Virus record (IMG/VR): IMGVR_UViG_3300042308_001511
Span: 1 to 64,000 of that record
Reading direction: 5' to 3' (one strand)
DNA length: 64,000 nt
Part shown: piece by piece, positions 13,604 to 63,571 of the stretch
How positions within the stretch are numbered: position 1 is the first letter of the stretch
How the letters are laid out: each line of letters opens with the position of its first letter
Notes under the pieces: generated by a model
Told to the model about the DNA's origin: nothing
What the model saw: only the letters and a program-made list of their open reading frames with translations
Databases searched by the model: none
Program-made: the position numbers and the translations under genes

Positions 13604-13918
13604 ATGAACGGATTTGAAAATGTAGTATTTCCACACATAAGATACATCATCGGCAACGAGACGAAAAACTCCAGATTGAGATACTACCTGGGCGGGGAGC
13701 CGCCTGAGAACGACTGCCGACTTACCGTCGGAAAGGAATACACGGTCAGTTTCCTTTGGTACTCACCGGACGCCAAAACCGATAGGAAATACGTATGGAC
13801 CTGCAAGTCGGAAGAGATAAACGAGCATGGTACCAACCGCTACGTCAACGTGGATCCGAAGAACTTCGGCACAAAGTCGGATCTCAGGGAAAGAAGGATA
13901 AACGAAATAATTGATTGA
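13604..13918 (+). CDS. Hypothetical protein with C-terminal RERRINEII motif
   Basis: 104-aa ORF in a visibly more GC-rich segment. Confidence 0.7.
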   Translation: MNGFENVVFPHIRYIIGNETKNSRLRYYLGGEPPENDCRLTVGKEYTVSFLWYSPDAKTDRKYVWTCKSEEINEHGTNRYVNVDPKNFGTKSDLRERRINEIID

Positions 13919-13919
13919 T

Positions 13920-14528
13920 ATGTTGATGAGATACAACCACGGTGACGTGCTACAGCTACTTCCCGTAATGCACAACGACGGCAGTCAGTCGTTCATGTTA
14001 ACCGCTACCTTTTTCTACAACCAGGCGAGAATGGTCTGGGACATCGGCGACACGCTCGCACAGGCTTACCAGATTGAGAAAAGAAAACAAAAGGAGCATA
14101 GGATTGGCACGTTCGGGCACGTCAGACTCTGTGGTGCTAAGAACCTGCGTACCGGCCAGGTCGGTATCGTTAAGTTCGGTGTCACGCTGAGGAGGAAGAT
14201 ATCCGATTACTACAGAGAGAACGGATTGAGGATGGACAGAATCGGGCAGGAAGAATACCAGTACCATTCCGAGATTCACGTATCGATAATCACCGAGACT
14301 ATTAGAAACTTAGGCGTAGCTAGCTACGACAAATCGAGTGTCGGCTACTGCGGTTTTCCTTACGAGAGCATAAATCCTACCAGTTTCTCGTCACTGAACA
14401 TAGACGATTTCATCTCGAACCACGGCTTGCAAAGGCACTGGCACACAATAGACAGCGAGACCGACGGCTTACTATCCGCCGTCCGTTCCAACAAACGTAA
14501 CGAAAAACTCGAAAAGATAGGAATATGA
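13920..14528 (+). CDS. Hypothetical protein with C-terminal RNEKLEKI motif
   Basis: About 202-aa ORF starting immediately after the previous stop. Confidence 0.7.
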   Translation: MLMRYNHGDVLQLLPVMHNDGSQSFMLTATFFYNQARMVWDIGDTLAQAYQIEKRKQKEHRIGTFGHVRLCGAKNLRTGQVGIVKFGVTLRRKISDYYRENGLRMDRIGQEEYQYHSEIHVSIITETIRNLGVASYDKSSVGYCGFPYESINPTSFSSLNIDDFISNHGLQRHWHTIDSETDGLLSAVRSNKRNEKLEKIGI

Positions 14529-14668
14529 TGTTTTACAACGAGGATTTACAAAATAAAATAACTTCTTATGGAAGAGGTATCATAAAAGAATACCTTATGT
14601 TCGTTAGAAAAGAAGAAAGAAAACAAAAAATAATCAAAATTTGGTCAAATAAAATCGATTCTAACTAA
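14525..14668 (+). CDS. Small unannotated 47-aa protein
   Basis: ATGA overlap with the previous stop; MMFYNEDLQNKITSYGRGIIKEYLMFVRKEERKQKIIKIWSNKIDSN carries the same RxxKIxxI motif. Confidence 0.6.
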   Translation: MMFYNEDLQNKITSYGRGIIKEYLMFVRKEERKQKIIKIWSNKIDSN

Positions 14669-14783
14669 ACTTTTAGTTATATTTATCGTATAAATTATGT
14701 GCAAATGGCACATAGAAGGCAGAAGAATTTATAAATAAGTGGAATTGACTACGAAGTCAAATAATAAAAAATAAAAAGCAAAT

Positions 14784-15395
14784 ATGATGGTAAACAACGG
14801 GTTATTTAGTGAACAAGAAAAAGTATTCGTGGAAAGAACTGGTAAGGACTTTTCAACATTATACAAAAAGTATTATCCAAAACTGATTTATTTCACGTCC
14901 AAAATGCTAGAATCCAATAAAATGGATATACAGTATGCAGAGGATATATCAACAGATTCTTTTCTTACCGCATTCGAGAAGATTGACAAATATGAAAAAG
15001 AGAAGGCGCAATTCTCTACCTGGCTATTTACAATAGCAAAAAACCTTGCGCTACAATCAATCAAAAATAATAAGAAACAAATTTCACTCGACGTAGAATA
15101 TGACGATGAGGGTACAACAATGAAAGACTTTATTCAGGAAGACGATAACAACTCAGTCGAGAGACAAGCAATTAGTGAGATAAAGGCTAAAATAATGGTT
15201 GATAAAATATATGAGCTGAAAGAACCTTACAAAACCGTTATCGAGATGCGTGAGATTAAGAAGATGGCTTACAAAGATATTTCTGAAATGTTAGGTAAAA
15301 ACTTATCTACTATAAAGAGTCAAATTCGAAATGGAAGAGCTATACTTGTAAAAGAGACAGAAGCAGAATTTTCCAAAATTGATGAATCGTTCTAA
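14784..15395 (+). CDS. ECF-type sigma-70 factor
   Basis: Region 2: AEDISTDSFLTAFEKIDKY...FSTWLFTIAKN; region 4: MAYKDISEMLGKNLSTIKSQIRNGR. Confidence 0.9.
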   Translation: MMVNNGLFSEQEKVFVERTGKDFSTLYKKYYPKLIYFTSKMLESNKMDIQYAEDISTDSFLTAFEKIDKYEKEKAQFSTWLFTIAKNLALQSIKNNKKQISLDVEYDDEGTTMKDFIQEDDNNSVERQAISEIKAKIMVDKIYELKEPYKTVIEMREIKKMAYKDISEMLGKNLSTIKSQIRNGRAILVKETEAEFSKIDESF

Positions 15396-15416
15396 ACAGA
15401 AACAACAAATAAAAAT

Positions 15417-15443
15417 AACCGCCTTCCAATTAGGCGGTTTTTT
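15417..15443 (+). terminator. Intrinsic terminator
   Basis: aaccgcct-tccaatt-aggcggtt followed by a T-run. Confidence 0.75.
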
Positions 15444-15461
15444 ACTAACCTCAAAATAATT

Positions 15462-16028
15462 ATGGCAAACAACTTACAACTACCAAAAGAAAGACAAATC
15501 TATTTCACAAAACAAGTAGATCAGTCATCAATCGCCGAACTTACAAGGCAAATTATAGAAATAAATGAAGATGATAGACACTTAGAGAAACTCTATGCAG
15601 TTTATGATCTTGAGTATAAACCAAAACCAATCAAAGTCTATATTGATTCATATGGTGGTGCTGTATACCAATGCTTCGGTTTATTATCAGTGATTGAAAG
15701 AAGTCAAACTCCTGTTCATACAATTGTAACTGGTTGTGCAATGAGTTGTGGTTTCCTTATATTACTCGCAGGACATAAGAGGTTTGCTCACAAAATGTCA
15801 ACTCCATTATACCATCAAGTTTCCACAGGATTCTTTGGTAAAGTACAGGATATGGAAGAGAAATTAGAAGAAGCCAAAAGATTACAGACACAGATTGAGG
15901 ATTACACTAAATCCAGAACCAAAATTGCTAAGAAGAAACTCAGAGAAATACTTGAAAACAAAAAAGATTGGTATATGAGTGCCGATGAAGCGTTGGAACT
16001 TGGTGTAGTTGATGAAATATTAGACTAA
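15462..16028 (+). CDS. clpP: ClpP-family serine protease
   Basis: YIDSYGG, CAMSCG (catalytic Ser), YHQ (His), KDWYMSADEALELGVVD. Confidence 0.9.
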   Translation: MANNLQLPKERQIYFTKQVDQSSIAELTRQIIEINEDDRHLEKLYAVYDLEYKPKPIKVYIDSYGGAVYQCFGLLSVIERSQTPVHTIVTGCAMSCGFLILLAGHKRFAHKMSTPLYHQVSTGFFGKVQDMEEKLEEAKRLQTQIEDYTKSRTKIAKKKLREILENKKDWYMSADEALELGVVDEILD

Positions 16029-16040
16029 AAACTAATTGAT

Positions 16041-17345
16041 ATGGAACTGAAAAGACTTGCAGAGGAGGCGATTGATTATTTAAAAAGTAGGTGGTCGCTT
16101 CCCGAGCAGGGCCTTCTTGCTGGAGGATCACTTGCTAATACAATTTGGGCACTTAAAAACGGAACAGAACCACTAATAAATGATATCGATGTATTCGTCT
16201 ATGTTGATCACTTAGACTTTATAGACCCTAATGATAGAGAGACACTTTTCAGATACACCGAAAAAGAGGTAGATTATTACGACGATTATAACGGATATCG
16301 AGAGCATCCTTATGATAAAAAGTTCTACGCTATAAAGGAATCTACACGTGACGGTATAGTAAACACAATAACCTATGATGCGTCAGATGATGATCCGATG
16401 ATGATATTAGAATCATTTGATCTTAGTTGTACAGGTGTAGGTTATGAATTAGAGACCGGAAAGTATTTATGGACACAGGACTTTGAAGATTTTGTAAATA
16501 CTGGTAAGATAAAAGTCAGTAACATCGGAACTCCATCACACACCGCGATAAGACTCGTAAAGAAGTCCAAAGATTTGGGTGTAAAAATGGACGAGTTCGA
16601 AATGAAGTTACTTATGCATGCTATTGATTACAACTTTACAGATACAGTAAAAAGGTACTTCAAACAAAAACGAATGGACGACTACATCAGTGTAGAAGAA
16701 CTAATTTCAGAATACCTTGTACCATACCGAGTAGAAGAGGTAGAGAAGATGATACTTTTGAAATATGATACAGAAGAGAGGATATATGGTCTAAAAAGAA
16801 AATATTCGACTGATTCAGAGGAAGAAACCAACACAGCATCTGTTATTTTTGACGACGGTGATATCGATTTTTTTGATAAAATTCTATTAGAAGATAAAAC
16901 TGTATTTGGTGACGACAACATATTTAGAATTATGACCGGTAAAGATTTTCTAAGCTATATGAGAAACGTTTATGGTGACGAACAGAAGATGATACTTTTT
17001 AAAGGATTAGTTCCTCTATTTGGTGCTAAAAACTACTTCGATGAAATTCCGAAAGAAGAAGATTCTAATATGATTTGTTTATTGTCATCAGTCTCACCAT
17101 TGATTACAAAAGCACTAAAAGGAATGACAATTTCACAACAGATATGTGCTGTAAAAACGACATTCAGCGCATTTGATGATAAGACGGTTTCACTTGCCTT
17201 ATTAGAAAGCGGTAGAATAGTTGAACAATGGATGGACGAATCGGATTTACTTCTGATGGAACTTTCAGTAAGAAAAGATATTTTCGGAAGAATAGAGAGT
17301 CGAATAAATTCGTTCTATGAACTTTTAGGAAACGACATAGTATAA
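16041..17345 (+). CDS. Nucleotidyltransferase-superfamily protein (PolyA-pol/CCA-like head)
   Basis: LLAGGSLAN...INDIDVFV (GS/DxD motif) and downstream ESFDLSC. Confidence 0.6.
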   Translation: MELKRLAEEAIDYLKSRWSLPEQGLLAGGSLANTIWALKNGTEPLINDIDVFVYVDHLDFIDPNDRETLFRYTEKEVDYYDDYNGYREHPYDKKFYAIKESTRDGIVNTITYDASDDDPMMILESFDLSCTGVGYELETGKYLWTQDFEDFVNTGKIKVSNIGTPSHTAIRLVKKSKDLGVKMDEFEMKLLMHAIDYNFTDTVKRYFKQKRMDDYISVEELISEYLVPYRVEEVEKMILLKYDTEERIYGLKRKYSTDSEEETNTASVIFDDGDIDFFDKILLEDKTVFGDDNIFRIMTGKDFLSYMRNVYGDEQKMILFKGLVPLFGAKNYFDEIPKEEDSNMICLLSSVSPLITKALKGMTISQQICAVKTTFSAFDDKTVSLALLESGRIVEQWMDESDLLLMELSVRKDIFGRIESRINSFYELLGNDIV

Positions 17346-17367
17346 TACTAAAATAAAAAAGAAATAT

Positions 17368-17688: not shown

Positions 17689-17689
17689 T

Positions 17690-18202
17690 ATGTACAAAAC
17701 ACTCGAAATATTGAATTATGAAGATAAAGTCCGCCGTATAGCGGATCTTATCTCGTTTAACGAGCCTTATGTTACCGTACTGGGTCACGACTCACACGGT
17801 GAGAGTATGATTGATTCCGTTCTCGAAAAACTTGGTGGTGATTACGTGGTTTCAATATACGACGTAGACGACCTAAGACAGGTACATAGGGACAGGAGGA
17901 TAGATAGTGTAATCAACGAGTGTGAAGAAGTCTCAAACATTCATCCAAACTTCCTTGCGATACGGTTAGAGAGAAAGATTGATGATACAATGTTGCAAGA
18001 CTTAAGAATCAAAGTCCGTCGGATATCACATCAGGCACACGAGATTGGTATCAGGGTGATATTCATATCACAGGTGAATAAAACTTTACCAGGAGACTCA
18101 CAGATGTCTTTCGTCGGTGGTATCCAGGTTATTTACGGAGCAGACCTGGCAATCGTCGCCATAGGAGAGAATGTCAAAGTGATTAAGAATAGATACGAAT
18201 AG
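17690..18202 (+). CDS. Degenerate DnaB/RecA-fold C-terminal-like protein
   Basis: VIFISQVNK...GADLAI...VKVIKNRY echoes DnaB motifs H3/H4; no Walker A. Confidence 0.45.
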   Translation: MYKTLEILNYEDKVRRIADLISFNEPYVTVLGHDSHGESMIDSVLEKLGGDYVVSIYDVDDLRQVHRDRRIDSVINECEEVSNIHPNFLAIRLERKIDDTMLQDLRIKVRRISHQAHEIGIRVIFISQVNKTLPGDSQMSFVGGIQVIYGADLAIVAIGENVKVIKNRYE

Positions 18203-18225: not shown

Positions 18226-18666
18226 ATGATGATAAAAAACAGAAAAGCATACCATGAGTACACAGTACTCGAAGATTTTGAGTGTGGTTTAATACTTACT
18301 GGTTCAGAGGTTAAGTCAATACGTGGTGGTGACGTAACTATTGGTGACTCTTTTGCTTATTTCAAAGCAGGTGAGATATTTGTGAAGAATATGAAAGTTT
18401 CACCGTATAAACAAGCACATAAAGCAGAGAAACACGATGAGAACCGTGAAAAAAAGTTACTTCTAAAAAAAAAGGAAATCGCTAAGATTGACAGGATGAT
18501 GGAAGAGAAGGGAACTACAATGATCCTACTTGATCTACACCTTAATAATAACCGAATAAAAGCGAAAATTGGTGTCTGTAAAGGTAAGAAACTTTGGAAC
18601 AAAAAAGAGGACATCAAACGACGTGATATTGATCGAGATATGAAAAGAGAGATTAGTCAAAGATGA
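18226..18666 (+). CDS. smpB: SsrA-binding protein SmpB
   Basis: NRKAYHEY, GLILTGSEVKSIR, REKKLLLKKKEI, KGKK and a basic C-terminal tail. Confidence 0.92.
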   Translation: MMIKNRKAYHEYTVLEDFECGLILTGSEVKSIRGGDVTIGDSFAYFKAGEIFVKNMKVSPYKQAHKAEKHDENREKKLLLKKKEIAKIDRMMEEKGTTMILLDLHLNNNRIKAKIGVCKGKKLWNKKEDIKRRDIDRDMKREISQR

Positions 18667-23295: not shown

Positions 23296-26200
23296 TTATA
23301 CTGCTCTTATTATAGCTTTTATTGTCCATATTCCACCACCAACTGCCGTTGTTGCACTAAGTAATACGTTTGTGCCCGAAAGTGAAACATTTAATGTTAT
23401 AGCACCAGTGCCAGATCCTATGTCTTGTGTACTCGTCTCATTGTATTCGAGATTAGTACCGTTCCATATTGCAACTATAGTCCCTGCTCTTGTACTCAAA
23501 CCACTCTGAACGTTGTAGTCTATGTGTGCCGATGTGTATGTTGTTGCACTGAATTGGTAGATTGTTGAATTTACAAGTCCTGCTGCTCTTACTTGTTTGG
23601 TAGTTGTATATAATGAAGGTGCTTGGTAGTCTCCCATCACAATTGTGTTGTCCGAGAATGCTTCGAATACCGGAATACCAGATATATCATTCACAGAGAA
23701 AAGTGATCCGACTAAGTTATCTGTTGCTGTTAGTATTTCACCTGCAACACCATCTGTTTTTATAATCGTAGAGTTTGCAATATTACTTCTTACGTGTAAT
23801 TCTGCAGTAGGTACGGTTAGACCGATACCAACATTACCGAAACGATCAACACGCATTCTCTCAGTACCTCTTGTTCCAATCACAACATTGTTGTTCATAT
23901 CATCAACAGTTGAGTATCCTGTTATATCTATGTATGTTTTTCCACTACCGGGGTTTGTACCACCACCTGCAGATATTCTAAGGAATCCATCATCATAATT
24001 AGAACCAGAAGCACCATATGCTCTTATCTCACCATTTGTAAGTGTTCCCGCAGAAACGGTTGGTCGTAAAGACGTGTTATTTAGTCCAGAAAGAACGTTT
24101 ATTGAACCTGCAACATCTAATTTAGCACTAGGAGATGCTGTACCTATACCCACATCACCACTTGTAGAGATTACGAATTGTGTTGTGTCTGGATTCGTAA
24201 AATCTTCTACTACGAATGCATTACCAGTTCCGGTTTGTGTAATTCTTACTAAATCGGTTGTGGTTGAACCTGATGCTATTATTGCAGATACTGTGTTAGA
24301 TGTAATATGAAGTCTTGCAGCAGCTGATAATGTACCAATACCAACATTATCACCATTTAGATAAATAGAACTTGTTGCGGATAAGTTATTCACACTTCTC
24401 CAATATGGTACATAATTTACAACACCAGAACCAGTAACACCATTTACTGCTGCAAGTATATTAGAATATGTTAACCAAGAACCATGCCCAGTTGCATCAG
24501 ATACAAGTGCTTTATTTACACCTTGTGTTGTATCTTGAAGTCTGAATCCAGTTGCAACAGAAGATGCCCAGATGTGCATTTTTGCAGTGTTAGAGAAAGT
24601 ACCAATTGAAACTCCACCACCATCTGCTTGCATAATGATTGGTTTCGTTCCGCCTACTCCTCTGGTTGCCGCATACATATAAGCAAAATCCATTCTTTGG
24701 TCTACACCCATAACAAAGTAATCACCACCTGTAGAAGGACTACCTATCATAAGTGCGTGTAATGCATTCGTTCCTGCACTATACGAAGTACCTAATGGTC
24801 CAGTGTTTATTGAAAGATAAGATGTTGGGTTTATTGCGGTATTAGAATAATCACCTATACCGACGTTTCCATCTGATGCAATTCTCATTCTTTCTAAAAC
24901 ACCATTTGATGCAATTGCTCTATTTCCAGTTGATATTGTTCCAGTTCTGAATACTAACGAACCTGCCTGAGTTGCACCTGCAGTTATAGATCCTACACCT
25001 GCTACTGAATAAGTCCCATTCATAAATTGAACTAATCCATTTACTGCAGTATTTGTTGTAGATACAACATTTCTCGAAAGAGATAACACTGAATCGTCAC
25101 CAGCGAAATTTATATGTAATGGTGATATAGGTGTAGTAGTTCCTATACCAACATAGTTATTTTCACCTTCTAACGTCATAACAGTATTTGTGTTATCGTT
25201 GAAGTTTAGTCTATATGATTGTGTTGAACCAGAATCGGTGATGTTCCATTGTTTGTGTGATGATGTTGCACCACCATTTGTTTGATTTGCAATATATAAA
25301 CTTTCTAAAGAAGAACCACCTAATGATATTGGAAAAGTTGCACGTGATAACCATCTTACATTCAATGGATCAATTGTTTGTGTTGATTTTATAAGTTCTC
25401 CAGACGCCCATGTCCATCCTAAACTATAACCAAGTGTCTTTTCAACGTAGATTCTCATATCGTGTCCTGGTGACTGATCAATTGAGAAAAGTCCTTCTAA
25501 GTAATAAATTGTTGATGTTGTTGTAGGATTTTCGTTTTTGACAATTCTTACTTCCTTAATGTAATTCGCGTTTCCGAATTTTTGTAGAGAAAGTGTTGTT
25601 ACGTCAGTATAGTCTTTATATGCGTCTATTACATATGTAACTGGTAAATAGTTTCCACCTGTGTAAGAAATAATTATTCTTATATTACCTCGTCCTGATG
25701 GGTTGGAAACGGAACCAATTTGATACCAATATTGTTCAGTTATGTTTGTAGATGATATTGATGCCGTCCCCACATATTCAACCGTAAGTGGACCTGCAAT
25801 AGTAACAGATCCTGTTGCAGAAAATGTTCCAGTAAGGTTAAGTATTGAACCATCAAATGTTAGATTTTGTTCTGCTGTTACATTTGGTGATGTTCCGTTT
25901 AATGTTATTATACCATTATTAGTATTTCCAGTCAATGCTAATGAACCTGTAGGTCCAATTGGACCAGTAGAACCTTGTGGTCCTTGTGTACCGGATGTTC
26001 CTGATGATCCTGATGTTCCACTTGAACCGGATGTTCCTGATGATCCTGACGATCCACTTGTTCCTGAAGATCCTGACGATCCACTTGTTCCTGATGATCC
26101 TGACGATCCTCTTGTTCCTGATGATCCTGACGATCCACTTGTTCCTGACGACCCAGAAGTACCAGACGACCCTGATGTTCCTGACGACCCTGATGTTCCT

Positions 26201-29200
26201 GACGACCCAGAAGTACCAGACGACCCTGATGTTCCTGATGATCCTGACGATCCTCTTGTTCCTGACGATCCTGACGACCCTGATGTTCCTGATGACCCAG
26301 AAGTACCAGACGACCCTGATGTTCCTGATGTTCCTGATGACCCAGAAGTACCAGACGACCCTGATGTTCCTGATGACCCAGAAGTACCAGACGATCCACT
26401 TGTTCCTGATGATCCTGATGACCCAGAAGTACCAGACGACCCTGATGTTCCTGATGACCCAGAAGTACCAGACGATCCTGATGATCCTGATGATCCTGAC
26501 GATCCTCTTGTTCCTGACGATCCTGACGACCCAGAAGTTCCACTTGAACCAGATGTTCCTGACGATCCTGACGATCCTGACGACCCTGATGTTCCGTTTG
26601 TACCATTACCGCCTGACGCACCTGCTAAGTTTACTGTCCAACTATTATATGTGTTTCCTAAACCAACACCACTATTTACACTCACAACTAAAACTCCTGT
26701 TCCAGAATTATAAGAGGTTACAGTCGCATTCATATAATCGGCACCACTCGAAATAAGAACCGTTTGATTAGGAGTATATGCTAAACCTGTTCCAACTGTA
26801 AATGTCTTACTTCCAGATGATACTATAGTATTAGATGTTGTAGATGTAGTTGCATATTTGTCACTTTGACCTGAAGATCCACTCGACCCTGATGTTCCAG
26901 AAGACCCTGAACTACCAGATGTTCCTGTTGTTCCTGAACTACCAGATGTTCCTGTTGTTCCTGAACTACCAGATGTTCCTGTCGATCCTGAACTACCAGA
27001 TGTTCCTGAAGATCCTGATGTTCCTGAAGATCCTGATGTTCCTGAAGATCCTGAACTTCCTCTGGTTCCGGATGATCCTGATGATCCAGATGTTCCTGAA
27101 CTACCAGATGTTCCTGAAGATCCTGAACTACCAGATGTTCCTGATGATCCTGACGACCCTCTTGTTCCTGACGACCCAGACGTTCCACTTGACCCAGATG
27201 TTCCACTCGAACCTGATGTTCCACTCGAACCTGATGTTCCTGAAGATCCACTTGGCCCAGATGTTCCTGATGATCCTGACGACCCAGACGTTCCACTTGA
27301 CCCTGATGATCCTGATGTTCCTGATGTTCCACTCGAACCTGATGTTCCACTCGAACCTGATGTTCCACTCGACCCTGATGTTCCAGAAGATCCACTTGTT
27401 CCTGACGACCCAGATGATCCTGATGATCCAGATGTTCCTGATGTCCCACTTGAACCAGAAGTTCCGGATGATCCGGATGTTCCTGAAGATCCTGAACTTC
27501 CTCTGGTTCCGGATGATCCTGATGATCCAGATGTTCCTGATGTCCCACTTGAACCAGAAGTTCCGGATGATCCTGATGTTCCTGATGATCCTGATGTTCC
27601 TGAAGATCCACTTGACCCAGATGTTCCTGATGTTCCTGAAGATCCACTTGAACCAGATGTTCCTGATGTTCCTGAAGACCCACTTGTTCCTGAAGACCCA
27701 CTTGTTCCTGAAGACCCACTTGTTCCACCTAAACTTATTGATGATTTGTATCTAACTACTCCATCAGTACCCAAAACCAAAATGTTGGTTTCTGTTGTTC
27801 CGACTACTCCATTGTATATTGTAAGACTATTGACTGAAGTATTTCCTGAGAAAGTTGCATTACCAGTCAAAGTTAATGTATTGTTATCGAATGTTAAGTT
27901 ATTTCTTGCTATTGCACTATTTGAAGATGCACCATCCGCAGTTAGTATTCTGTTAGGTCCAGGTGTAGTTATACTATTGAATCCGGTTCCACTTGTTCCT
28001 GACGACCCAGATGTTCCTGAACTACCTGAAGATCCTCTTGTTCCCGAACTACCTGAAGATCCACTTGTTCCTGAACTACCTGAAGACCCACTTGTTCCTG
28101 AAGACCCACTTGTTCCTGATGTTCCTGAACTACCTGAAGATCCTCTTGTTCCCGAACTACCTGATGACCCACTTGTTCCTGAACTACCTGAAGATCCACT
28201 TGTTCCTGATGAACCAGATGTTCCTGATGAACCAGATGTTCCTGATGTTCCAGAACTACCTGAAGATCCTCTTGTTCCTGATGAACCAGATGTTCCTGAT
28301 GAACCAGATGTTCCTGATGTTCCTGATGACCCTGCCGACCCTGAACTACCTGAAGATCCTGCAACACCTACATCACCAATAATACTAACTAGCCAATCAT
28401 CATAAGTACCTGTACCTACTACATAATCAACATTTACTAAAATATCGGTTGTTTGTGGATTAGTTATACTGGAAGCTATCTGTCCCTCCATATAAGTTGT
28501 CGCACTGTTCCAAATTCGAACTCGTGTTCCTTGTGTCCAACCTAAGTTTACGATTGGTGAACTAGGGTTAATAGGTAGTGTTTTTGAACCGGTTGTTAAA
28601 CTCAAAGAACTTGCACTATATGATAAACTCATAATTGGTCTTGTTCCAGATGTTCCGGATGATCCACTAGAACCTGATGTTCCTGATGTCCCACTTGACC
28701 CACTGGTTCCTGATGTTCCTGAAGATCCTGAACTTCCTCTAGTTCCAGATGATCCACTAGAACCTGATGTTCCTGAAGATCCACTTGTTCCTGATGACCC
28801 AGATGTTCCTGAAGATCCACTTGTTCCTGATGTCCCACTTGACCCACTGGTTCCTGAAGATCCTGAACTTCCTCTAGTTCCAGATGATCCACTAGAACCT
28901 GATGTTCCTGAAGATCCACTTGTTCCAGATGTTCCGGATGATCCTGCACTACCGGAAGAGCCTGATGTCCCACTTGAACCGGATGATCCTGATGTTCCTG
29001 ATGATCCACTAGAACCAGATGTTCCTGATGATCCTGAACTTCCGCTGGTTCCGGATGATCCTGATGTTCCTGAAGATCCTGAACTTCCTCTGGTTCCTGA
29101 TGATCCAGATGACCCAGATGTTCCTGATGTCCCACTTGAGCCTGATGTTCCTGATGAGCCTGATGTTCCTGATGAGCCTGATGTTCCTGATGAGCCTGAT

Positions 29201-31425
29201 GTTCCTGAAGATCCACTTGTTCCTGAAGATCCACTTGTTCCTGATGACCCAGATGTTCCCGAAGATCCACTTGTTCCAGATGTTCCAGATGATCCACTAG
29301 AACCTGACGTTCCTGAAGATCCACTAGAACCAGATGTTCCGGATGTTCCAGATGATCCGGATGTTCCACTTGTCCCAGATGACCCTGAACTTCCTCTGGT
29401 TCCAGATGACCCGGATGACCCTGATGTTCCACTAGAACCAGATGTTCCACTTGATCCAGATGTTCCACTTGATCCTGATGTCCCACTTGATCCTGATGAA
29501 CCACTAGAACCAGATGTTCCACTAGAACCTGATGTTCCTGATGATCCACTAGAACCTGATGTTCCAGATGTTCCAGATGATCCGGATGTTCCACTAGAAC
29601 CAGATGTTCCTGATGTTCCACTAGAACCAGATGTTCCACTTGACCCAGATGACCCTGAACTTCCACTTGACCCAGATGATCCGGATGTTCCACTAGAACC
29701 AGATGTTCCTGATGTTCCACTAGAACCAGATGTTCCGGATGTTCCGGATGTTCCACTAGAACCGGATGTTCCTGATGTTCCAGATGATCCACTGGTCCCT
29801 GATGATCCTGAACTTCCTCTGGTTCCGGATGACCCGGATGACCCAGATGTTCCACTAGAACCAGATGTTCCACTTGACCCAGATGTTCCACTTGACCCAG
29901 ATGTTCCTGATGATCCACTAGAACCAGAAGTTCCGGATGTTCCTGATGATCCTGAACTTCCTCTTGTTCCTGAACTTCCGCTTGTTCCTGAACTTCCGCT
30001 TGTTCCTGATGTTCCACTTGACCCCGAAGATCCAGAAGAACCTGACGATCCGCTTGTTCCTGATGTTCCACTGGTTCCTGATGACCCACTGGTTCCAGTA
30101 CTACCGGATGTTCCTGACGATCCACTGGTTCCTGATGAACCGGATGTTCCAGTACTACCGGATGATCCTGAAGACCCCGAAGTTCCTGATGTTCCTCTGG
30201 TTCCTGATGTTCCTGATGACCCTGAAGATCCTGATGTTCCTGATGACCCACTGGTTCCAGTACTACCCGAAGATCCCGAAGTTCCTGATGAACCAGATGT
30301 TCCTGATGAACCGGATGTTCCACTGGTTCCTGACGATCCACTGGTTCCTGATGACCCACTGGTTCCTGACGATCCACTAGTTCCAGTACTACCCGAAGAT
30401 CCCGAAGTTCCTGATGAACCACTGGTTCCTGATGACCCTGATGACCCTGATGTTCCTGATGTTCCTGAAGACCCTGAAGACCCGGATGATCCTGATGAAC
30501 CACTGGTTCCTGATGTTCCTGATGATCCATCACCACCAGATGCACCATCCAAATTTACGGTCCATGATGCAGATGAATTAGTAGGACTTCCTACAACACC
30601 GGACGATAGTGGGTGTAGTGTGTTTCCTTTTGCTGCAACAATTTGTCCTGTTGTTTTGTTATATGAAGTTATTGTTGCTTCTATATAGTTTAGACTATCT
30701 ATTGCAAATATTATAGATTGACCTGGACTATATGCTAAGCCAGTTTCAATTGTTAGTGTCCAATTAGATTGTGATGAGTCTATAGTAAGTGTGTTTACAC
30801 TTCTGTACCTATCACCGGAACCTGTTGCACCCACCGGACCTGTTGCACCTGTTACACCACCACCAAAGGTCGCATTTGAGAGTGACTCACCTATATAATA
30901 GTAAATCTCAGCTGTTACGGGTATTGGTCCAGTTGTTTTTTCTTGCCAGAAAATACCCGATTGATATTGATGTATCCAGTTTCTCGCATCATCTGCAACA
31001 ATCTGTGTTGAAGTTCCATCAAAAACTTTTATACCATATAGAGAACCATAAGAGTTAGATATTGCATTATTTACTCTTACACCAGGATATATTCCAACTA
31101 AAGAACCTGTATTATATGCAAATGAAAGACCAGTCTTTGGATCTGTTCCTGAAGGAGCTACAGATGGCCACTCTAAGAAGTATCCGTGGTTGTTAGAAGA
31201 AGTATCTACAACAAAATCCGCAGTTACTAAAAGTGCAATTCCATTTGTCACTGCAGAACTTGGATCGTTTGAAGGTATAACACTTGTCCAAACGTTGGTA
31301 GAACTAACGTTAAAGAATATACCTTCGGCTTCACCACCAAGATCTTTATTGATATCGGTGTTTGATTTACCTAAAAGGTTTTTGAATGCTATATTCGCCT
31401 GGTTGTTCGGTTCTATTCCTGCCAT
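23296..31425 (-). CDS. Giant collagen-like tail fibre (Gly-Ser/Thr triplets) with C-terminal phage fibre domains
   Basis: 2709 aa; four G-X-Y blocks (GSS/GTS/GTR); C-terminal GNVGIGTxxP..LH / ERMRI repeats typical of phage fibres. Confidence 0.85.
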   Translation of the reverse strand: MAGIEPNNQANIAFKNLLGKSNTDINKDLGGEAEGIFFNVSSTNVWTSVIPSNDPSSAVTNGIALLVTADFVVDTSSNNHGYFLEWPSVAPSGTDPKTGLSFAYNTGSLVGIYPGVRVNNAISNSYGSLYGIKVFDGTSTQIVADDARNWIHQYQSGIFWQEKTTGPIPVTAEIYYYIGESLSNATFGGGVTGATGPVGATGSGDRYRSVNTLTIDSSQSNWTLTIETGLAYSPGQSIIFAIDSLNYIEATITSYNKTTGQIVAAKGNTLHPLSSGVVGSPTNSSASWTVNLDGASGGDGSSGTSGTSGSSGSSGSSGSSGTSGTSGSSGSSGTSGSSGTSGSSGSTGTSGSSGTSGSSGTSGSSGTSGTSGSSGTSGSSGTSGSSGSTGTSGSSGTSGSSGSSGTSGTRGTSGTSGSSGSSGSTGTSGSSGTSGSSGTSGSTGTSGSSGTSGTSGTSGSSGSSGSSGSSGTSGTSGSSGTSGSSGTRGSSGSSGTSGTSGSSGSSGTSGSSGTSGSSGTSGSSGTSGSSGSSGTRGSSGSSGTSGSSGTSGTSGSSGTSGTSGTSGSSGTSGTSGSSGTSGSSGSSGSSGSSGSSGTSGSSGTSGTSGSSGTSGSSGTSGTSGSSGSSGTSGSSGTSGSSGSSGSSGTSGSSGTSGSSGTSGSSGTSGSSGSSGTRGSSGSSGTSGTSGSSGTSGTSGSSGSSGTSGSSGSSGTSGTSGSSGTSGSSGTSGSSGTSGSSGTSGSSGTSGSSGTSGSSGTSGSSGTSGTSGSSGSSGTRGSSGSSGTSGSSGTSGSSGSSGTSGSSGSSGTSGSSGSSGTSGSSGSAGSSGTSGTSGSSGTSGSSGSSGTRGSSGSSGTSGSSGTSGTSGSSGTSGSSGTSGSSGTSGSSGSSGTRGSSGSSGTSGTSGSSGTSGTSGSSGSSGTSGTRPIMSLSYSASSLSLTTGSKTLPINPSSPIVNLGWTQGTRVRIWNSATTYMEGQIASSITNPQTTDILVNVDYVVGTGTYDDWLVSIIGDVGVAGSSGSSGSAGSSGTSGTSGSSGTSGSSGTRGSSGSSGTSGTSGSSGTSGSSGTSGSSGSSGTSGSSGSSGTRGSSGSSGTSGTSGSSGTSGSSGSSGTSGSSGSSGTRGSSGSSGTSGSSGTSGTGFNSITTPGPNRILTADGASSNSAIARNNLTFDNNTLTLTGNATFSGNTSVNSLTIYNGVVGTTETNILVLGTDGVVRYKSSISLGGTSGSSGTSGSSGTSGSSGTSGTSGSSGSSGTSGTSGSSGSSGTSGSSGTSGSSGTSGSSGTSGTSGSSGSSGTRGSSGSSGTSGSSGTSGSSGTSGTSGSSGSSGSSGTSGSSGTSGSSGTSGSSGTSGSSGTSGTSGSSGSSGTSGSSGSSGTSGPSGSSGTSGSSGTSGSSGTSGSSGTSGSSGTRGSSGSSGTSGSSGSSGTSGSSGTSGSSGSSGTRGSSGSSGTSGSSGTSGSSGTSGSSGSTGTSGSSGTTGTSGSSGTTGTSGSSGSSGTSGSSGSSGQSDKYATTSTTSNTIVSSGSKTFTVGTGLAYTPNQTVLISSGADYMNATVTSYNSGTGVLVVSVNSGVGLGNTYNSWTVNLAGASGGNGTNGTSGSSGSSGSSGTSGSSGTSGSSGSSGTRGSSGSSGSSGSSGTSGSSGTSGSSGTSGSSGSSGTSGSSGTSGSSGTSGSSGTSGSSGTSGTSGSSGTSGSSGTSGSSGSSGTRGSSGSSGTSGSSGTSGSSGTSGSSGTSGSSGTSGSSGTSGSSGSSGTRGSSGSSGTSGSSGSSGTSGSSGSSGTSGSSGTSGSSGTSGTQGPQGSTGPIGPTGSLALTGNTNNGIITLNGTSPNVTAEQNLTFDGSILNLTGTFSATGSVTIAGPLTVEYVGTASISSTNITEQYWYQIGSVSNPSGRGNIRIIISYTGGNYLPVTYVIDAYKDYTDVTTLSLQKFGNANYIKEVRIVKNENPTTTSTIYYLEGLFSIDQSPGHDMRIYVEKTLGYSLGWTWASGELIKSTQTIDPLNVRWLSRATFPISLGGSSLESLYIANQTNGGATSSHKQWNITDSGSTQSYRLNFNDNTNTVMTLEGENNYVGIGTTTPISPLHINFAGDDSVLSLSRNVVSTTNTAVNGLVQFMNGTYSVAGVGSITAGATQAGSLVFRTGTISTGNRAIASNGVLERMRIASDGNVGIGDYSNTAINPTSYLSINTGPLGTSYSAGTNALHALMIGSPSTGGDYFVMGVDQRMDFAYMYAATRGVGGTKPIIMQADGGGVSIGTFSNTAKMHIWASSVATGFRLQDTTQGVNKALVSDATGHGSWLTYSNILAAVNGVTGSGVVNYVPYWRSVNNLSATSSIYLNGDNVGIGTLSAAARLHITSNTVSAIIASGSTTTDLVRITQTGTGNAFVVEDFTNPDTTQFVISTSGDVGIGTASPSAKLDVAGSINVLSGLNNTSLRPTVSAGTLTNGEIRAYGASGSNYDDGFLRISAGGGTNPGSGKTYIDITGYSTVDDMNNNVVIGTRGTERMRVDRFGNVGIGLTVPTAELHVRSNIANSTIIKTDGVAGEILTATDNLVGSLFSVNDISGIPVFEAFSDNTIVMGDYQAPSLYTTTKQVRAAGLVNSTIYQFSATTYTSAHIDYNVQSGLSTRAGTIVAIWNGTNLEYNETSTQDIGSGTGAITLNVSLSGTNVLLSATTAVGGGIWTIKAIIRAV
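25950..26597 (-). repeat. 9-bp-period coding repeat block 4, ending in canonical collagen GPQGSTGPIGPTG
   Basis: Same units as block 1; boundaries approximate. Confidence 0.85.
26866..27727 (-). repeat. 9-bp-period coding repeat block 3
   Basis: Same units as block 1; boundaries approximate. Confidence 0.85.
27985..28362 (-). repeat. 9-bp-period coding repeat block 2
   Basis: Same units as block 1; boundaries approximate. Confidence 0.85.
28640..30530 (-). repeat. 9-bp-period coding repeat block 1 (GSS/GTS)
   Basis: Tandem degenerate units such as gatgttcct/gatgatcct on the + strand; boundaries approximate. Confidence 0.9.
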
Positions 31426-41185: not shown

Positions 41186-41212
41186 AAAAAGCCGACACTT
41201 AGTCGGCTTTTT
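41184..41212. terminator. Bidirectional terminator
   Basis: aaaaaaagccgac-actta-gtcggcttttt. Confidence 0.8.
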
Positions 41213-41456
41213 TGTTTATGTCTATTGTTCCGTAGAAGTTATTGTTGACCTGTGTTATGGCATACCTACTCTTCACTGAAGTTTTCGGGGAAAAGAAGTT
41301 GTCTTCTTTAGATGGGAAACCCCATAGTTCACTCATCAAAGACATCCTCCTTTGTGCGACCCAGTTGCCCAATTTGATGTTTTCTGCCATAACATATCGT
41401 GCCCATACGTATCCAGCTTCTAAACCTCCAGACTTTTTACCTACGACTTCACTCAT
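41199..41456 (-). CDS. Small protein resembling the C-terminus of the T4 gp23-type major capsid protein
   Basis: EAGYVWARYV...FSPKTSVKSRYA...FY versus gp23 DAGxxYxPYV...FQPxxGFKTRYG. Confidence 0.55.
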   Translation of the reverse strand: MSEVVGKKSGGLEAGYVWARYVMAENIKLGNWVAQRRMSLMSELWGFPSKEDNFFSPKTSVKSRYAITQVNNNFYGTIDINKKAD

Positions 41457-51540: not shown

Positions 51541-51741
51541 ATGGAAAAACAAATAAAATACGAGAGAGATTACGTCCAGTACCTCATAGAGAACAAAAAG
51601 TCGATTGACACCGAACTTCTCGATAAGTATTTCCTTAATGAGATTGAGTTCCAGGAACTAATCGATACGGTAGAATTAGATGATATACTTTCATTTCAAA
51701 GTTTTGTGAAATCTAAAAAGATAGATTCTTTATTGGGTTAA
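51541..51741 (+). CDS. Small hypothetical protein with C-terminal KSKKIDSLL motif
   Basis: 66-aa ORF followed by a terminator. Confidence 0.6.
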   Translation: MEKQIKYERDYVQYLIENKKSIDTELLDKYFLNEIEFQELIDTVELDDILSFQSFVKSKKIDSLLG

Positions 51742-58354: not shown

Positions 58355-58356
58355 AT

Positions 58357-60024: not shown

Positions 60025-60136
60025 TTCGTTTTTTTTGTGTTTTTTATAAAAAATTATACAGTATTTTCGAAAAATAGTTTAGGAAAAGAGGTTTTTTACA
60101 TTTTTGACATAATATATACAGAAAAATATAAAAATT

Positions 60137-60316
60137 ATGCACATCCTTGACTATGATGAGTTCAACATCTACACAAGCGAGGCAGATGTTGTTAGCTACG
60201 TTGAGCAACTGATCGAGGAGGGCATAGAGCTGAAGGAAGATGCTTATGACAAATGTCTAGTTCACTTCGGCGAAAACCTCCGGAGTTTGATTGACTCTAT
60301 CTTCGTCGCTGAGTAA
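60137..60316 (+). CDS. Small unannotated 59-aa protein with CTS-like N-terminus
   Basis: MHILDYDEFNIYTSEADVVSYVEQLIEEG...IFVAE*; TAATATATA at 60110-60118 upstream and a terminator downstream. Confidence 0.7.
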   Translation: MHILDYDEFNIYTSEADVVSYVEQLIEEGIELKEDAYDKCLVHFGENLRSLIDSIFVAE

Positions 60317-60343
60317 AAATACCATCCAACGATGGTATTTTTT
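60315..60343. terminator. Bidirectional terminator
   Basis: aaaaataccatc-caac-gatggtattttt. Confidence 0.8.
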
Positions 60344-60647
60344 ATTCTAAGATATTGTCTATCTGTCTGTTGCGTCTTATCGTTTTGAGCAGGTTTTTAA
60401 GTTCCTTTTCCTCGAACTTCAACCGATTCTTGCTACTCTTACCGAGTTTCTCTTTACACCATTCACCCGGTTCACAGAACCTACCGACCGGAAATTTGTG
60501 TAGCAGGTAGAAGTCTTGGTTGTCCCAATTATCGAGATCTTCGCAGTAGGCCACTATCGCGTCGTCGTATTCGGTCCACACAGACCTTATCTCAGGAAGT
60601 GCCTGACCACGTTGACAGGATATTATGTAGACAAATTGTTCTTTCAT
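60342..60647 (-). CDS. Hypothetical protein with C-terminal RNRQIDNIL motif
   Basis: 101 aa, ATGA overlap with the polB stop. Confidence 0.7.
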   Translation of the reverse strand: MKEQFVYIISCQRGQALPEIRSVWTEYDDAIVAYCEDLDNWDNQDFYLLHKFPVGRFCEPGEWCKEKLGKSSKNRLKFEEKELKNLLKTIRRNRQIDNILE

Positions 60648-62170
60648 ATCTGCGATTCTAATTTTTTTATCTCATCGAGAACTGCTTTTAGTTCTTCTTT
60701 TCGATCCATCATTATCTTTTTGTTCTTTTTCCTATCCGCATAAACGTCTTCAAGCATAATAAGTGTAGGTGACATTCGTTTCTCAAATACAACTCCGTTC
60801 ACACAAAGAACGTGTTTATCATAATCTATCTCACGTCCGTTATCACAATGTGTTAGTTTCTTAGTATCCTGTACTCCAACAAAGTTTTCTGGTGCGATAA
60901 AGAATTGCCTTTGAGTTGTTGGATAAAGTGAGGCAAAATCGTATGTCACGCACCATCTGTTCATTCCAACCACCGGATCTTTTACCCACCCACCAGCTAA
61001 TGCTGACTCACCTTCACCTTTACCTTCTTTGAAAAGTACTATGTTATCCATTTCTCGGAATCTACCTCTCAAAACACCTTCAGTGATTGCTAATGATGCC
61101 AATGCGTTGTTCATCTGTGAAACAACGTCTACAATTTTTATTTTAGATAATGAAGAGATTGCATATACAATAGATATGTAATTTTTAGAGTCATGTATCT
61201 TTTGAACCAACACAGAATCGACGGCGTTGTAATACATAAATGTTTCGAAGTCATCCTCATATAATTTCTGTAAAGATCCTGTATATTTTATCTTCTCAAC
61301 ACCAACCAATTTATTCGATACGAAATCCAGTGAAGATGACTCTTTAACTTTTATGGATGTGTCACATATCTCATATAGTTGCATATAGTCAAAAATCATT
61401 CGATGCATAGGTACTTCGAATTCAGTTCCCCATATTTTATTCATTCTTTTGAGTGGTGATGATTCTGCTGGATTTATTGTCCATTCTTTCCCGTTCATCC
61501 ATTTGGTTATCTTCCTAGCTCGGTTGACAAGGTATAACCAGTCATAGTTGAGGAAGTTCCAACCGGTCATCAAAGGCATTTTTGGTGCCATCTTATGGAA
61601 GAATGTGTAAAGCATTTCAAATTCGTCTTCGTACTTAACATATTTGAATTTATAATCTACACCAAACTTCTCAAAGTATTTATTTGTGTTCTTCTGTATT
61701 CTAAGTTGCATATCTTCTGGCATGTCTTTTAGTCCCAGAAGTATTATTTTATCATCATATACTATGGATATAGACAGAACCTGTGTAGATGCTCCTTCTT
61801 TAACAACATTTCCTTCGGCATCTTTAACGTCTGCCGGTTCTGGAAATCCGTCAACAATCTCGGTCTCGATATCAAGGAAGTAAACTTTCGGAAGGTTGAA
61901 CTCAAAAAGCTCTTCCTGTTCCTTTGCTGGTAATCCATCTAAGAACTCGTAGATTGCGTACCTGTCAGGTCTGTCGACCTCTATTTGTTTAACGTGTTTT
62001 CCATCCCACGATTTGTAGTCTGGGTGTCTTTGTGGATCATTCTCTTCACACGTTACATATTTCATAGGATTCTCCCAGTCGTAGTATTTTAGTTTTATTT
62101 CTCCAGATTTGTCTACGTAGCTGGCTACCAGTTTTTTTGTATGTGTTAGGTATTGTGTCTCTATAAGCAT
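60644..62170 (-). CDS. Family B DNA polymerase, N-terminal part (3'-5' exonuclease plus motif A)
   Basis: ExoI DIETE, ExoII GWNFLNYD, ExoIII YNAVD, motif A DFASLYP; ends in the fingers helix without KxxxNSxYG or YGDTDS. Confidence 0.88.
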   Translation of the reverse strand: MLIETQYLTHTKKLVASYVDKSGEIKLKYYDWENPMKYVTCEENDPQRHPDYKSWDGKHVKQIEVDRPDRYAIYEFLDGLPAKEQEELFEFNLPKVYFLDIETEIVDGFPEPADVKDAEGNVVKEGASTQVLSISIVYDDKIILLGLKDMPEDMQLRIQKNTNKYFEKFGVDYKFKYVKYEDEFEMLYTFFHKMAPKMPLMTGWNFLNYDWLYLVNRARKITKWMNGKEWTINPAESSPLKRMNKIWGTEFEVPMHRMIFDYMQLYEICDTSIKVKESSSLDFVSNKLVGVEKIKYTGSLQKLYEDDFETFMYYNAVDSVLVQKIHDSKNYISIVYAISSLSKIKIVDVVSQMNNALASLAITEGVLRGRFREMDNIVLFKEGKGEGESALAGGWVKDPVVGMNRWCVTYDFASLYPTTQRQFFIAPENFVGVQDTKKLTHCDNGREIDYDKHVLCVNGVVFEKRMSPTLIMLEDVYADRKKNKKIMMDRKEELKAVLDEIKKLESQI

Positions 62171-62221
62171 CTAATTGTGTATTTGTTGTTGTTTATATTT
62201 TTGACTTTAACTATGTTTATG

Positions 62222-62734
62222 TTAGAAGTCACAGTCGTAGTAATCCAATATTCCACCATCACTCTTTACGAATATTAGTTCGTCGCGTCTTACAAGTTGA
62301 TAATCATAATGCCTTCCTAATTTGAACAGCGTTCTTATGAAAGGTATTCCTTCACCTTCGTTAACTTGTTTTTCTTCTATCATTAGACAAAGTATTTTTC
62401 TGTCTTCCTCAGGATTGTAATTAACTACTTCATCTTCATGATCTCTTTCGAGTCCTTTTTTACCATATGTTATGAATGTTGATTCAAGTCTTTCACCACT
62501 AGGTGTATACTCTATCCATACGTTGTCACCTATTTTTATATTGACATCTTCATCCTTTAAATAAACCCTTGTCCAGAAGTATACTTTCTCAGGTGTTACT
62601 TCTACCTGTATTTCACTTACATCGTCACTCAAATCGGTGGTATCTACATCCTGTAGTTGTTCTCTTACAAAGTCGTAAAGAGATATTGGATCTCCAGACC
62701 CAATAATGTATTCCTTTTCAGTACTAGTTTCCAT
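62222..62734 (-). CDS. Hypothetical protein
   Basis: 170-aa ORF in the operon. Confidence 0.65.
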   Translation of the reverse strand: METSTEKEYIIGSGDPISLYDFVREQLQDVDTTDLSDDVSEIQVEVTPEKVYFWTRVYLKDEDVNIKIGDNVWIEYTPSGERLESTFITYGKKGLERDHEDEVVNYNPEEDRKILCLMIEEKQVNEGEGIPFIRTLFKLGRHYDYQLVRRDELIFVKSDGGILDYYDCDF

Positions 62735-63008
62735 TTTTTTCGTTTGTTTTTTTATATTCTAACCAAGACTCCAAACTTTCGTAGTCTCTTGATTTACCCG
62801 CATCAAATGCTGCATTCAATTCTTTATAATTGTATTTTGGTATCGTCTTTGGTATTTCATAATTGTGGTTTCCATTCGACACAAAAGCTTGAAATAGTTT
62901 CATCTCCTCATTATATGGTCCATATTTTTCCTCGTTACGGTTGTTTATTTCGATTACGATTTGGTGTGAAGGATTGTTAGGGTCAAGACCCTCGTTCAAT
63001 TTGCTCAT
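62724..63008 (-). CDS. Hypothetical protein
   Basis: 94-aa ORF overlapping its neighbours. Confidence 0.6.
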   Translation of the reverse strand: MSKLNEGLDPNNPSHQIVIEINNRNEEKYGPYNEEMKLFQAFVSNGNHNYEIPKTIPKYNYKELNAAFDAGKSRDYESLESWLEYKKTNEKNGN

Positions 63009-63571
63009 ATTATCTCGTTTATTTTTTTGTTTCTTACATATGCCTTAGTCCACTCTTCAAGACTCAACACACCGAAGTCTGGATCCTCCACGTTGTGCTC
63101 ACTACGTACAGGTGATCTAGGCAGCAAAGTAGCATACCTATTTTCCTGGTGTCGTATGTATTTGTCATAGTTTATACAATAACCTTTGTCGGTATTGTTG
63201 TTTTTGTCAGTATCCAATAAAAACTCTAAAACAAATACATCACACGGAATACTCCTAATAAGACGTACATACTCTACAAACGGATAGTCATCTATCAGAT
63301 TGTGTATCATAAGACCTTCAACAAATACAAAAGTGTTAGGTTCCTTCTCTACGAGTTCACGGACTAATGTCAATCTTTTTGAGTCCTCAACTATGTCGGT
63401 TGAAAGAGTGAATTTCCACGTGAACTTCGAGTCAGGATATGGCATAACCTTCTGAACTTCTCTATGTGTGAGAAGAATAGATTGGTAGCCAGAGGTTTCA
63501 AGTCTCTTAGTCATCTCGATAAAAAAATAGGTCTGACTATTTGTGTCAAGCTTTATTAGTGTGTTCGGCAT
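63005..63571 (-). CDS. Hypothetical protein with C-terminal RNKKINEII motif
   Basis: 188-aa ORF. Confidence 0.65.
   Translation of the reverse strand: MPNTLIKLDTNSQTYFFIEMTKRLETSGYQSILLTHREVQKVMPYPDSKFTWKFTLSTDIVEDSKRLTLVRELVEKEPNTFVFVEGLMIHNLIDDYPFVEYVRLIRSIPCDVFVLEFLLDTDKNNNTDKGYCINYDKYIRHQENRYATLLPRSPVRSEHNVEDPDFGVLSLEEWTKAYVRNKKINEII

Follow-up and report, generated by a model that had tools for sequence, protein, structure and literature searches.

Terminal address peptides and the tag of a huge freshwater phage

Short peptides that address unrelated proteins to one place are known from very different systems. The capsid targeting sequence (CTS) of phage T4 directs several unrelated phage proteins to one phage-built structure; it is N-terminal, the prohead protease removes it, and a few proteins have it. 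The cargo-loading peptides of encapsulins and the encapsulation peptides of microcompartments are short and terminal, are carried by unrelated cargo and bind inside a protein shell, those of microcompartments being amphipathic helices. The oomycete RxLR, the Plasmodium PEXEL and the C-terminal E-block of type IV effectors are short addresses on large, fast-turnover sets of unrelated small proteins, and the PIP-box, which is often C-terminal, reads Q-x-x-[ILM]-x-x-[FY]-[FY]. In the scaffolding protein of phage P22, R293 and K296, three residues apart, contact acidic residues of the coat N-arm (PMC9965877), and its C-terminal fragment, fused to any cargo, brings about loading into procapsids (PMC9962691). 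The subject of this work is a C-terminal tag that came to light in the first 64,000 nucleotides (the window) of the IMG/VR virus record IMGVR_UViG_3300042308_001511, a linear contig of 344,083 bp that represents a huge freshwater phage. Numbered from its Arg as position 0, the tag has a consensus of about 14 residues, [K/L]-x-E-hydrophobic-R-[D/E/N]-x-[K/R]-[I/L]-x-x-[I/L]-[G/L]-[I/x], which is usually followed by 0-3 residues and the stop.

Unlike the N-terminal CTS, the tag is C-terminal in 82 of the 88 matches that a profile built from 218 tags, with a cut-off of 8 bits, gives in this genome, and the other six are internal, at domain ends. With encapsulin cargo-loading peptides it shares the position at the C-termini of unrelated proteins, but their Gly/Ser-Leu consensus, of the GSLxIGSLK kind, differs from the tag logo, R-[DEN]-x-[KR]-[IL]-x-x-[IL]-[GL]. 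No shell partner of the tag came to light, though no search aimed at shell families was made. To our knowledge, there is no parallel for cargo peptides on the scale of 15-18% of a proteome. RxLR, PEXEL and E-block are secretion or export signals of cells, whereas the bearer of the tag is a phage, which is not known to have a transport machine. The spacing of the PIP-box (1, 4, 7, 8) is matched, but D/E/N/K stands for the Gln, and aliphatic residues or Gly for the two aromatics at 7-8; the sliding-clamp models PF09116 and PF02768 match nothing in the genome, although divergent clamps could be missed by them. The P22 scaffolding helix resembles the tag in being C-terminal and helical and in its basic i/i+3 pair, R0 and K3 being the best-conserved polar residues of the tag. 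It differs in that it belongs to one protein and forms a helix-loop-helix of about 40 residues, whereas the tag is a single helix of about 14 residues in both models and is carried by about 100 natural proteins; moreover, a PDB profile search gives no sequence similarity between the two. Searches of a literature library (with the motif strings, Mahaphage and shared C-terminal phage motifs) found no description, which is not proof of absence, and a shared C-terminal helix tag of this kind appears to be undescribed.

Frequency and position of the tag

The genes of the whole contig were called with a simple codon-usage scorer, which gave 488 open reading frames (ORFs) and a coding density of 93%; these calls are crude, and the tag counts depend on the stop positions alone. 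The pattern R-x-x-[KRQ]-[IL]-x-x-[ILV], at most six residues from the C-terminus, is present in 89 of the 488 proteins, against a mean of 0.92 and a maximum of 4 in 200 shuffles, with each protein shuffled separately. An earlier note on this DNA had proposed that the motif recurs at the ends of many small proteins, and against this background chance fails decisively as its explanation. Internal matches to the pattern amount to 32 over the whole contig (22 expected). In 58 of the 89 C-terminal matches exactly two residues follow the 8-residue core, and between zero and eight residues, often acidic, trail it altogether. The carriers stand in tandem arrays of co-directional small genes and concentrate at 196-202 kb and 285-343 kb of the contig, outside the window, which is only the fringe of the phenomenon.

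The nine instances that the earlier note had listed in the window are all present as peptide strings in the translations of the ORFs that it named; scored in bits against the 218-tag profile, they are of unequal quality, with four clear carriers and two borderline cases, one doubtful case and two chance matches. Coordinates are those of the window, and lengths are given in amino acids (aa).

13604-13918 (+): clear carrier, 104 aa; tag coded at 13874-13915, KSDLRERRINEIID then stop, 14.8 bits; no Pfam or PHROG family
13920-14528 (+): clear carrier, 202 aa from the ATG at 13920; tag coded at 14484-14525, RSNKRNEKLEKIGI then stop, 9.5 bits; no Pfam family
14525-14668 (+): borderline carrier, 47 aa; RKQKIIKIW coded at 14606-14647, then 6 residues, 6.6 bits
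17690-18202 (+): borderline, protein of 170 aa with the internal copy RQVHRDRRIDSVIN, coded at 17876-17917, 5.8 bits
51541-51741 (+): doubtful, ORF of 66 aa ending KSKKIDSLLG, coded at 51697-51738, 2.6 bits
60342-60647 (-): clear carrier, 101 aa, directly downstream of the DNA polymerase gene; tag coded at 60345-60386, KTIRRNRQIDNILE then stop, 9.8 bits
63005-63571 (-): clear carrier, 188 aa; tag coded at 63008-63046, KAYVRNKKINEII then stop, 16.2 bits; no Pfam or PHROG family

The carrier at 13920-14528 has the flavour of the tag that ends in L-G-I (LGI), and its stop, a TGA, overlaps the start codon (ATG) of the ORF that follows, whose RKQKIIKIW is a short basic RKxKIxKIW variant, similar to the RKxKIxxIF flavour found on very small proteins of the uncultured huge phage LR745206. 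In the ORF at 51541-51741, K replaces the otherwise invariant R; the K-I..L-L spacing fits the tag, but the score does not. The two chance matches are the ORF at 2-469, with an internal match of 2.7 bits, and the ORF at 41199-41456 (-), with no profile match. The latter resembles by eye, with no alignment behind the likeness, a 75-aa protein of LR745206 (255010-255237), the stretches common to both being GKKS..LEAG..VW and KSRYA..VNN.(F)YG; the LR745206 protein ends in a basic tag variant, IRKRKIENIFK..., and the window ORF ends without a tag.

Shape of the motif and lineage flavours

When the tags are aligned on the Arg, positions -30 to -8 carry practically no information, all of it lying between -4 and +9. 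Positions that the search pattern leaves free are nonetheless informative, +1 (D/E/N) with 1.5 bits and +8 (G/L) with 1.7 bits; R0 is invariant, and K or R stands at position 3 in 90-99%. On a helical wheel computed from the logos, R0, D/E1, K3, I/L4, I/L7 and L/G8 fall between 300 and 100 degrees, within an arc of about 160 degrees, and the variable positions 2, 5, 6 and 9 lie on the opposite side of the helix. The L-G-I of the G flavour has the look of a helix C-cap. A profile search of the PDB with the 89 C-terminal 32-mers found no relative, the SAP, HeH and Rho_N Pfam models match none of these 89 sequences at E-values up to 10, and a search of the ESM Atlas with a C-terminal 26-mer returned only unnamed short clusters.

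Each lineage has its own form of the tag. The consensus is R-E-x-K-L-x-E-L-G-I in this phage, R-D-x-K-I-N-x-I-L in LR745206 and R-K-x-[KR]-I-E-N-L-L in LR756504, so that +1 is E/D, D and K, and +8 is G, L and L/N, respectively; in each genome about 100 unrelated proteins follow the flavour of their own lineage.

Carrier bodies and portability

The proteins that carry the tag have a median length of 95-105 aa, are slightly acidic and are not membrane proteins, with bodies that span 35 to 731 aa. After trimming of the tails, BLASTP places the 89 carriers of this genome in 79 groups, and three rounds of profile searches on 403 trimmed bodies pooled from this genome, LR745206 and IMG/VR loci give 257 clusters, of which 198 are singletons and the largest, with an extended F-I-P-L-x-E-W-R lead-in, has 44 members. 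A real Pfam domain, a domain of unknown function, occurs in one of 218 scanned carriers (1/90 here, 0/128 in LR745206), and no PHROGs or PADLOC family was found among the 218; a DNA methylase match proved to be a false positive of the search pattern.

Two carriers, those with enough homologues, were modelled with AlphaFold. The one at 60342-60647 is predicted to be an alpha/beta protein, with a predicted local distance difference test (pLDDT) score of 90, in which the tag forms the C-terminal half of helix 80-100; Foldseek found no PDB match for this fold. It has 55 homologues with 41-98% identity, all of them with the tag and with an invariant R. A 71-aa member of the largest family is predicted as a five- to six-stranded barrel (pLDDT 92), with the tag as helix 58-68 right after the last strand, and its best Foldseek matches, with weak E-values, are SH3, Tudor and KOW-like barrels. 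According to these models, different folds end in the same helical tag. Together with the 257 clusters and the lack of Pfam, PHROG and PADLOC families described above, the two predicted folds bear out the claim of the earlier note that the carriers share nothing else detectable.

The barrel body also exists without the tag. Its family profile finds 5,795 cluster representatives in a library of 1.84 billion proteins, in which the matches of small single-domain barrels extend through the tag, while the long ones consist of 3-16 tandem barrels and match only up to it; the sequences P0060 and P0080 confirm such tandem barrels without tag, which reach 2,766 aa and come from public metagenomes. One three-barrel protein starts with an N-terminal MKHLKKY motif. 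Conversely, tags may stand inside proteins: there are 14 internal copies at 8 bits or more in LR745206, internal copies precede Gly/Asp/Glu-rich linkers and more sequence, and the protein at contig 315824-316408 has one internal and one terminal copy. The stronger internal copies look like fused neighbouring carriers.

Carriers also turn over rapidly. Only 21 of the 89 could be paired with a homologue in LR745206, as opposed to 103 of the 288 small non-carriers. The pattern of the tag is present in 17 of these 21 homologues, and the remaining four have related endings; the LGI and IL flavours interconvert between homologues. For tag swaps between lineages, orthologous bodies were compared, but these have diverged too far to be informative.

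Selection acts on the protein, since synonymous codons at the conserved positions mirror genome usage. Arg is encoded by AGA, AGG, CGA, CGT and CGC, Leu by all six codons and Gly by all four; the codon frequencies of the tags track genome-wide usage in both genomes examined, as seen for Arg (AGA 0.61 in tags and 0.52 in the genome, AGG 0.16 and 0.22, CGN 0.23 and 0.26). Tags that precede a TAA and an intergenic spacer are conserved as well as those whose TGA overlaps the next ATG. The carrier stop is TGA in 52% of cases, compared with 28%, and an ATGA overlap with the next gene occurs in 45%, compared with 16%; these frequent overlaps fit tight operon-like arrays, but do not explain the peptide. 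The varied codons, the unrelated bodies and the barrel that also occurs without tag agree with the earlier description of the motif as a portable module, at the level of the protein.

Distribution and a second tag in a sister lineage

The contig has a completeness of about 91% (CheckV) and a G+C (GC) content of 36.6%, and about 12 studies contain near-identical DNA, in at least 19 metagenome runs of lakes, rivers and freshwater. The DNA polymerase in the window shares 79% identity with its counterparts in the uncultured huge phages LR745206 (635 kb) and LR756502 (642 kb), 40-42% with those in LR756501 (735 kb) and LR756504, 33% with that in LR756500 and 29% with those in Lak phages. At the protein level, the tag count of 89/488 here compares with 129/928 in LR745206 (2.2 expected) and 95/906 in LR756504 (1.6 expected), the latter revealed by the protein-level analysis, as counts of a DNA pattern had underestimated the tag in that genome. 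The DNA pattern gives 28 LGI-stop matches in LR756502, with 0 in the reversed control, and 3-35 matches in eight large IMG/VR genomes, with 0-1 in the control. Dozens of IMG/VR loci bear tags, some of them 15-18 within 13-15 kb, and most such loci also have further proteins in common with this phage. In a codon-specific form, the tag has 48 matches in IMG/VR and a single one in 596 Gbp of prokaryote genomes: the tag is virus-specific. LR756501 is tag-less at the protein level (2 matches, 1.3 expected), LR756500 and Lak-A1 have no excess by DNA pattern, and the cultured Flavobacterium phage MaF61 and Chryseobacterium phage MA9V-2 have no matches to the LGI flavour, the only one searched in them.

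An unbiased scan for C-terminally enriched patterns recovers the tag in its three bearers and finds a different motif in LR756501. There, 41 of 984 proteins end in (R/K)(V/I)(F/Y)(S/T)-x-x-DPYGEE-x-W plus 1-3 residues, on 40 unrelated bodies and with varied codons; DPYGEExW also occurs internally 62 times in LR756501, and it has 0-1 matches in this genome, LR745206 and LR756504. A further motif, M-[KR]-x-[ILV]-[KR]-x-[FY]-[DENQ]-[DE]-[FL] (MKYIKLFEEF-like), is N-terminal and never internal, and is present in 10, 18 and 18 proteins of this genome, LR745206 and LR756504, respectively, and in none of LR756501. We take it to resemble the CTS of T4. In the three bearers it is almost never on the same protein as the C-terminal tag, and none of the ten MKxLKxFEEF-like proteins here carries the tag, in accordance with the earlier remark that the carriers do not have a CTS-like N-terminus.

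LR756501 (W02, loci L215-L251), e.g., 499.6-506.3 kb and 552.4-561.9 kb: DPYGEExW carriers
Contig 80589, 158435, 166882, 209069, 237269, 292683, 299307, 312789 and others, outside the window: genes with the MKYIKLFEEF-like motif

Proposed role of the tag

The reading that we favour, with moderate confidence, is that the tag, a helix of about 14 residues, serves as a portable docking element or address, read by one lineage-specific partner. The helix would present one conserved face, made up of three aliphatic residues and an invariant Arg with Asp/Glu and Lys beside it, and this face would bind a single common partner, bringing many cargo proteins to the same place or machine. Since the consensus moves as a whole from one lineage to the next, the partner would probably differ between phage lineages, and in that case either the phage itself or a narrow group of hosts would supply it. 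The tag is set on the ends of about 100 small, fast-evolving and mutually unrelated accessory proteins per genome, within one clade of huge freshwater phages; as destinations, a host complex, a chaperone or an usher, and the procapsid or some other structure built by the phage might come into consideration. We infer binding to a common partner from the single conserved face (Arg, acid, Lys), the indifference to the attached body, the tolerance of internal positions, the retention of the tag despite the rapid turnover of the bodies, the concerted consensus of each lineage and the presence of another tag in the sister lineage.

Regarding the destination, the leading suggestion is that the tag loads cargo into the virion or another phage-built structure, because the P22 scaffolding helix is the closest mechanistic precedent; this can be put forward only tentatively. 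Equally speculative is an extension of it, by which interchangeable tag-receptor pairs (the RxxK helix here, DPYGEExW in LR756501) might load about 100 fast-evolving effectors into the virion or a phage compartment. If this were true, the loaded effectors would be delivered jointly or gathered at a single site, and the system would be the phage equivalent of effector translocation signals. Against loading into the virion, the carriers lie in small-gene arrays outside the structural block, and there is a weak sign of their early expression in the TATATTTGTA boxes, which resemble the Bacteroidota -7 promoter element (TAnnTTTG). These boxes stand 15-25 nt before start codons at 41 intergenic sites (e.g., window 55369) and are common between carrier genes, while (A/T)ATATATA boxes precede 83 genes and are the only type in the structural block at 20-60 kb. 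Carriers make up 26% of the genes per unit with TAnnTTTG and 11% with ATATATA, a weak enrichment that is not relied on here. The box types hint at a Bacteroidota host and two promoter classes.

The implications would go beyond this genome. Huge phages have hundreds of small genes of unknown function, and about a sixth of those here are tied together by one label; identification of the reader of the tag would assign one fate or destination to some 100 uncharacterised proteins per genome, and could reveal a new organising principle of huge-phage infection, be it cargo loading, a compartment or a hub. A natural tag of 14 residues could send any protein to that destination. The second, unrelated tag in the sister lineage suggests a strategy that extends beyond one clade, and in metagenomes the tag sorts phage ORFans, the SH3-like carrier family alone comprising the 5,795 cluster representatives mentioned above.

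Several points weigh against a docking helix with its own receptor. The computational analysis found no partner of the tag helix, and 100 ligands per receptor are many for a phage. The shifts of flavour (E/D to K, G to L/N) parallel the falling GC content of the three genomes (36.6%, 29% and 26%), and could reflect mutational drift instead of co-evolution with a receptor. Between orthologues, the identity of the tag (49%) is modestly above that of the body (34%), and it is inflated because the search pattern fixes the R. In addition, the high pLDDT of the helix in the models could mean packing on its own domain and not a free helix.

Alternative explanations

The first alternative, an unlikely one, is that the helix is a handle for self-association, which would pair with itself (e.g., antiparallel, R0 against D/E1) to form dimers or oligomers, or act as glue between carriers, with no separate receptor. 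A short amphipathic helix with complementary Arg and Asp/Glu side by side would suit this, one protein has two copies (contig 315824-316408), and many small phage proteins act as dimers; but a self-complementary helix would be free to drift in each protein, yet about 100 unrelated proteins per genome retain identical residues and change jointly from lineage to lineage, and promiscuous pairing among 100 proteins would be harmful.

It is rather improbable that the carriers are a single hyper-diverged family, that is, duplicates of one small gene whose C-terminal helix is the slowest-evolving structural piece. Their tandem co-directional arrays and the 44-member cluster with its F-I-P-L-x-E-W-R lead-in are what such an origin would leave, but not the 257 clusters and 198 singletons that persist after iterated profile searches, the body lengths of 35-731 aa, the absence of information upstream of -7, the two different predicted folds or the barrel body without tag; besides, the conserved surface charges are unlike what a purely structural helix keeps.

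A third possibility, with little probability left to it, is a degradation or chaperone tag read by the proteostasis system of the phage (ClpP with the Clp/Hsp100 unfoldase, or Hsp70-GrpE), which would time the removal or the folding of early proteins. The ClpP-family protease of the window had been named as a candidate hub in the earlier note, and the genome encodes a whole set of such proteins: two ClpP, a 707-aa Clp/Hsp100 unfoldase with two AAA modules, Hsp70 and GrpE, plus SmpB.

15462-16028 (+): ClpP-family protease (PF00574, 5.6e-29)
Window 15462-16028 and 18226-18666; contig ~93.9-96 kb, 118678-119217, 138097-139878 and 243344-244093: proteostasis and SmpB genes

In a comparison of four genomes, only 16 non-carrier genes track the tag, being common to its three bearers and missing in the tag-less LR756501, and these include GrpE and both genes for ClpP. 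In a wider sample this co-occurrence is broken: ClpP is not an obligatory partner, because it is absent from the tag-bearing IMG/VR genomes G002, G003 and G004 (95%, 91% and 94% complete) and present in the tag-less LR756500 and Lak-A1, so that the proposed role of ClpP as the hub loses its support in this obligatory form. Nor do the data agree well with a degron that is recognised by its free C-terminus, given the internal copies and the 0-8 residues that trail the core; the tag thus differs from the ssrA/ClpX degron in having no fixed register to the free C-terminus, as well as in its inconsistent co-occurrence with phage Clp. As for the chaperones, conserved acidic residues are unlike Hsp70-binding motifs. 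The tag was also considered as the tag peptide of a phage transfer-messenger RNA (tmRNA) and rejected, as ARAGORN finds no tmRNA here or in LR745206, although SmpB is present here; it finds no tRNA in the 344-kb contig either.

Finally, it is highly improbable that the peptide motif merely mirrors a signal in the nucleic acid or for translation at the ends of genes (such as a recombination site or translational coupling), for even if TGA stops and ATGA overlaps are commoner in carriers, a DNA-level repeat or coupling signal is largely refuted by codon choices at the conserved residues that are as varied as in the rest of the genome, by the equal conservation of tags with TAA and a spacer, and by the internal copies.

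Neighbouring genes and further observations in the window

Apart from the carriers, the window codes for an NAD-dependent ligase, a ClpP-family protease, a ribonucleotide reductase, a family B DNA polymerase fragment, a sigma factor, a thioredoxin, SmpB, a helicase and an S-adenosylhomocysteine (AdoHcy) hydrolase. The polymerase ORF (60644-62170, -) has only 508 aa and covers positions 21-151 of the 453 of Pfam DNA_pol_B; directly after it come a tag carrier and the helicase, and a search of the genome brought up no second polymerase piece. Either a split polymerase or strong divergence of its palm and thumb may account for this.

Contigs of one freshwater metatranscriptome run that are about 90% identical over 60397-60629, within the carrier next to the polymerase, have a word depth of 24-32 there, against 0-3 on the neighbouring polymerase; they do not prove transcription, as carry-over of DNA is possible.

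Lastly, an ORF of 2,709 aa occupies 23296-31425 (-), where the local GC content is 0.42-0.44, against about 0.35, and several long ORFs lie on the opposite strand and in other frames of the same region; these additional ORFs and the higher GC content suggest a repetitive or compositionally odd coding sequence.

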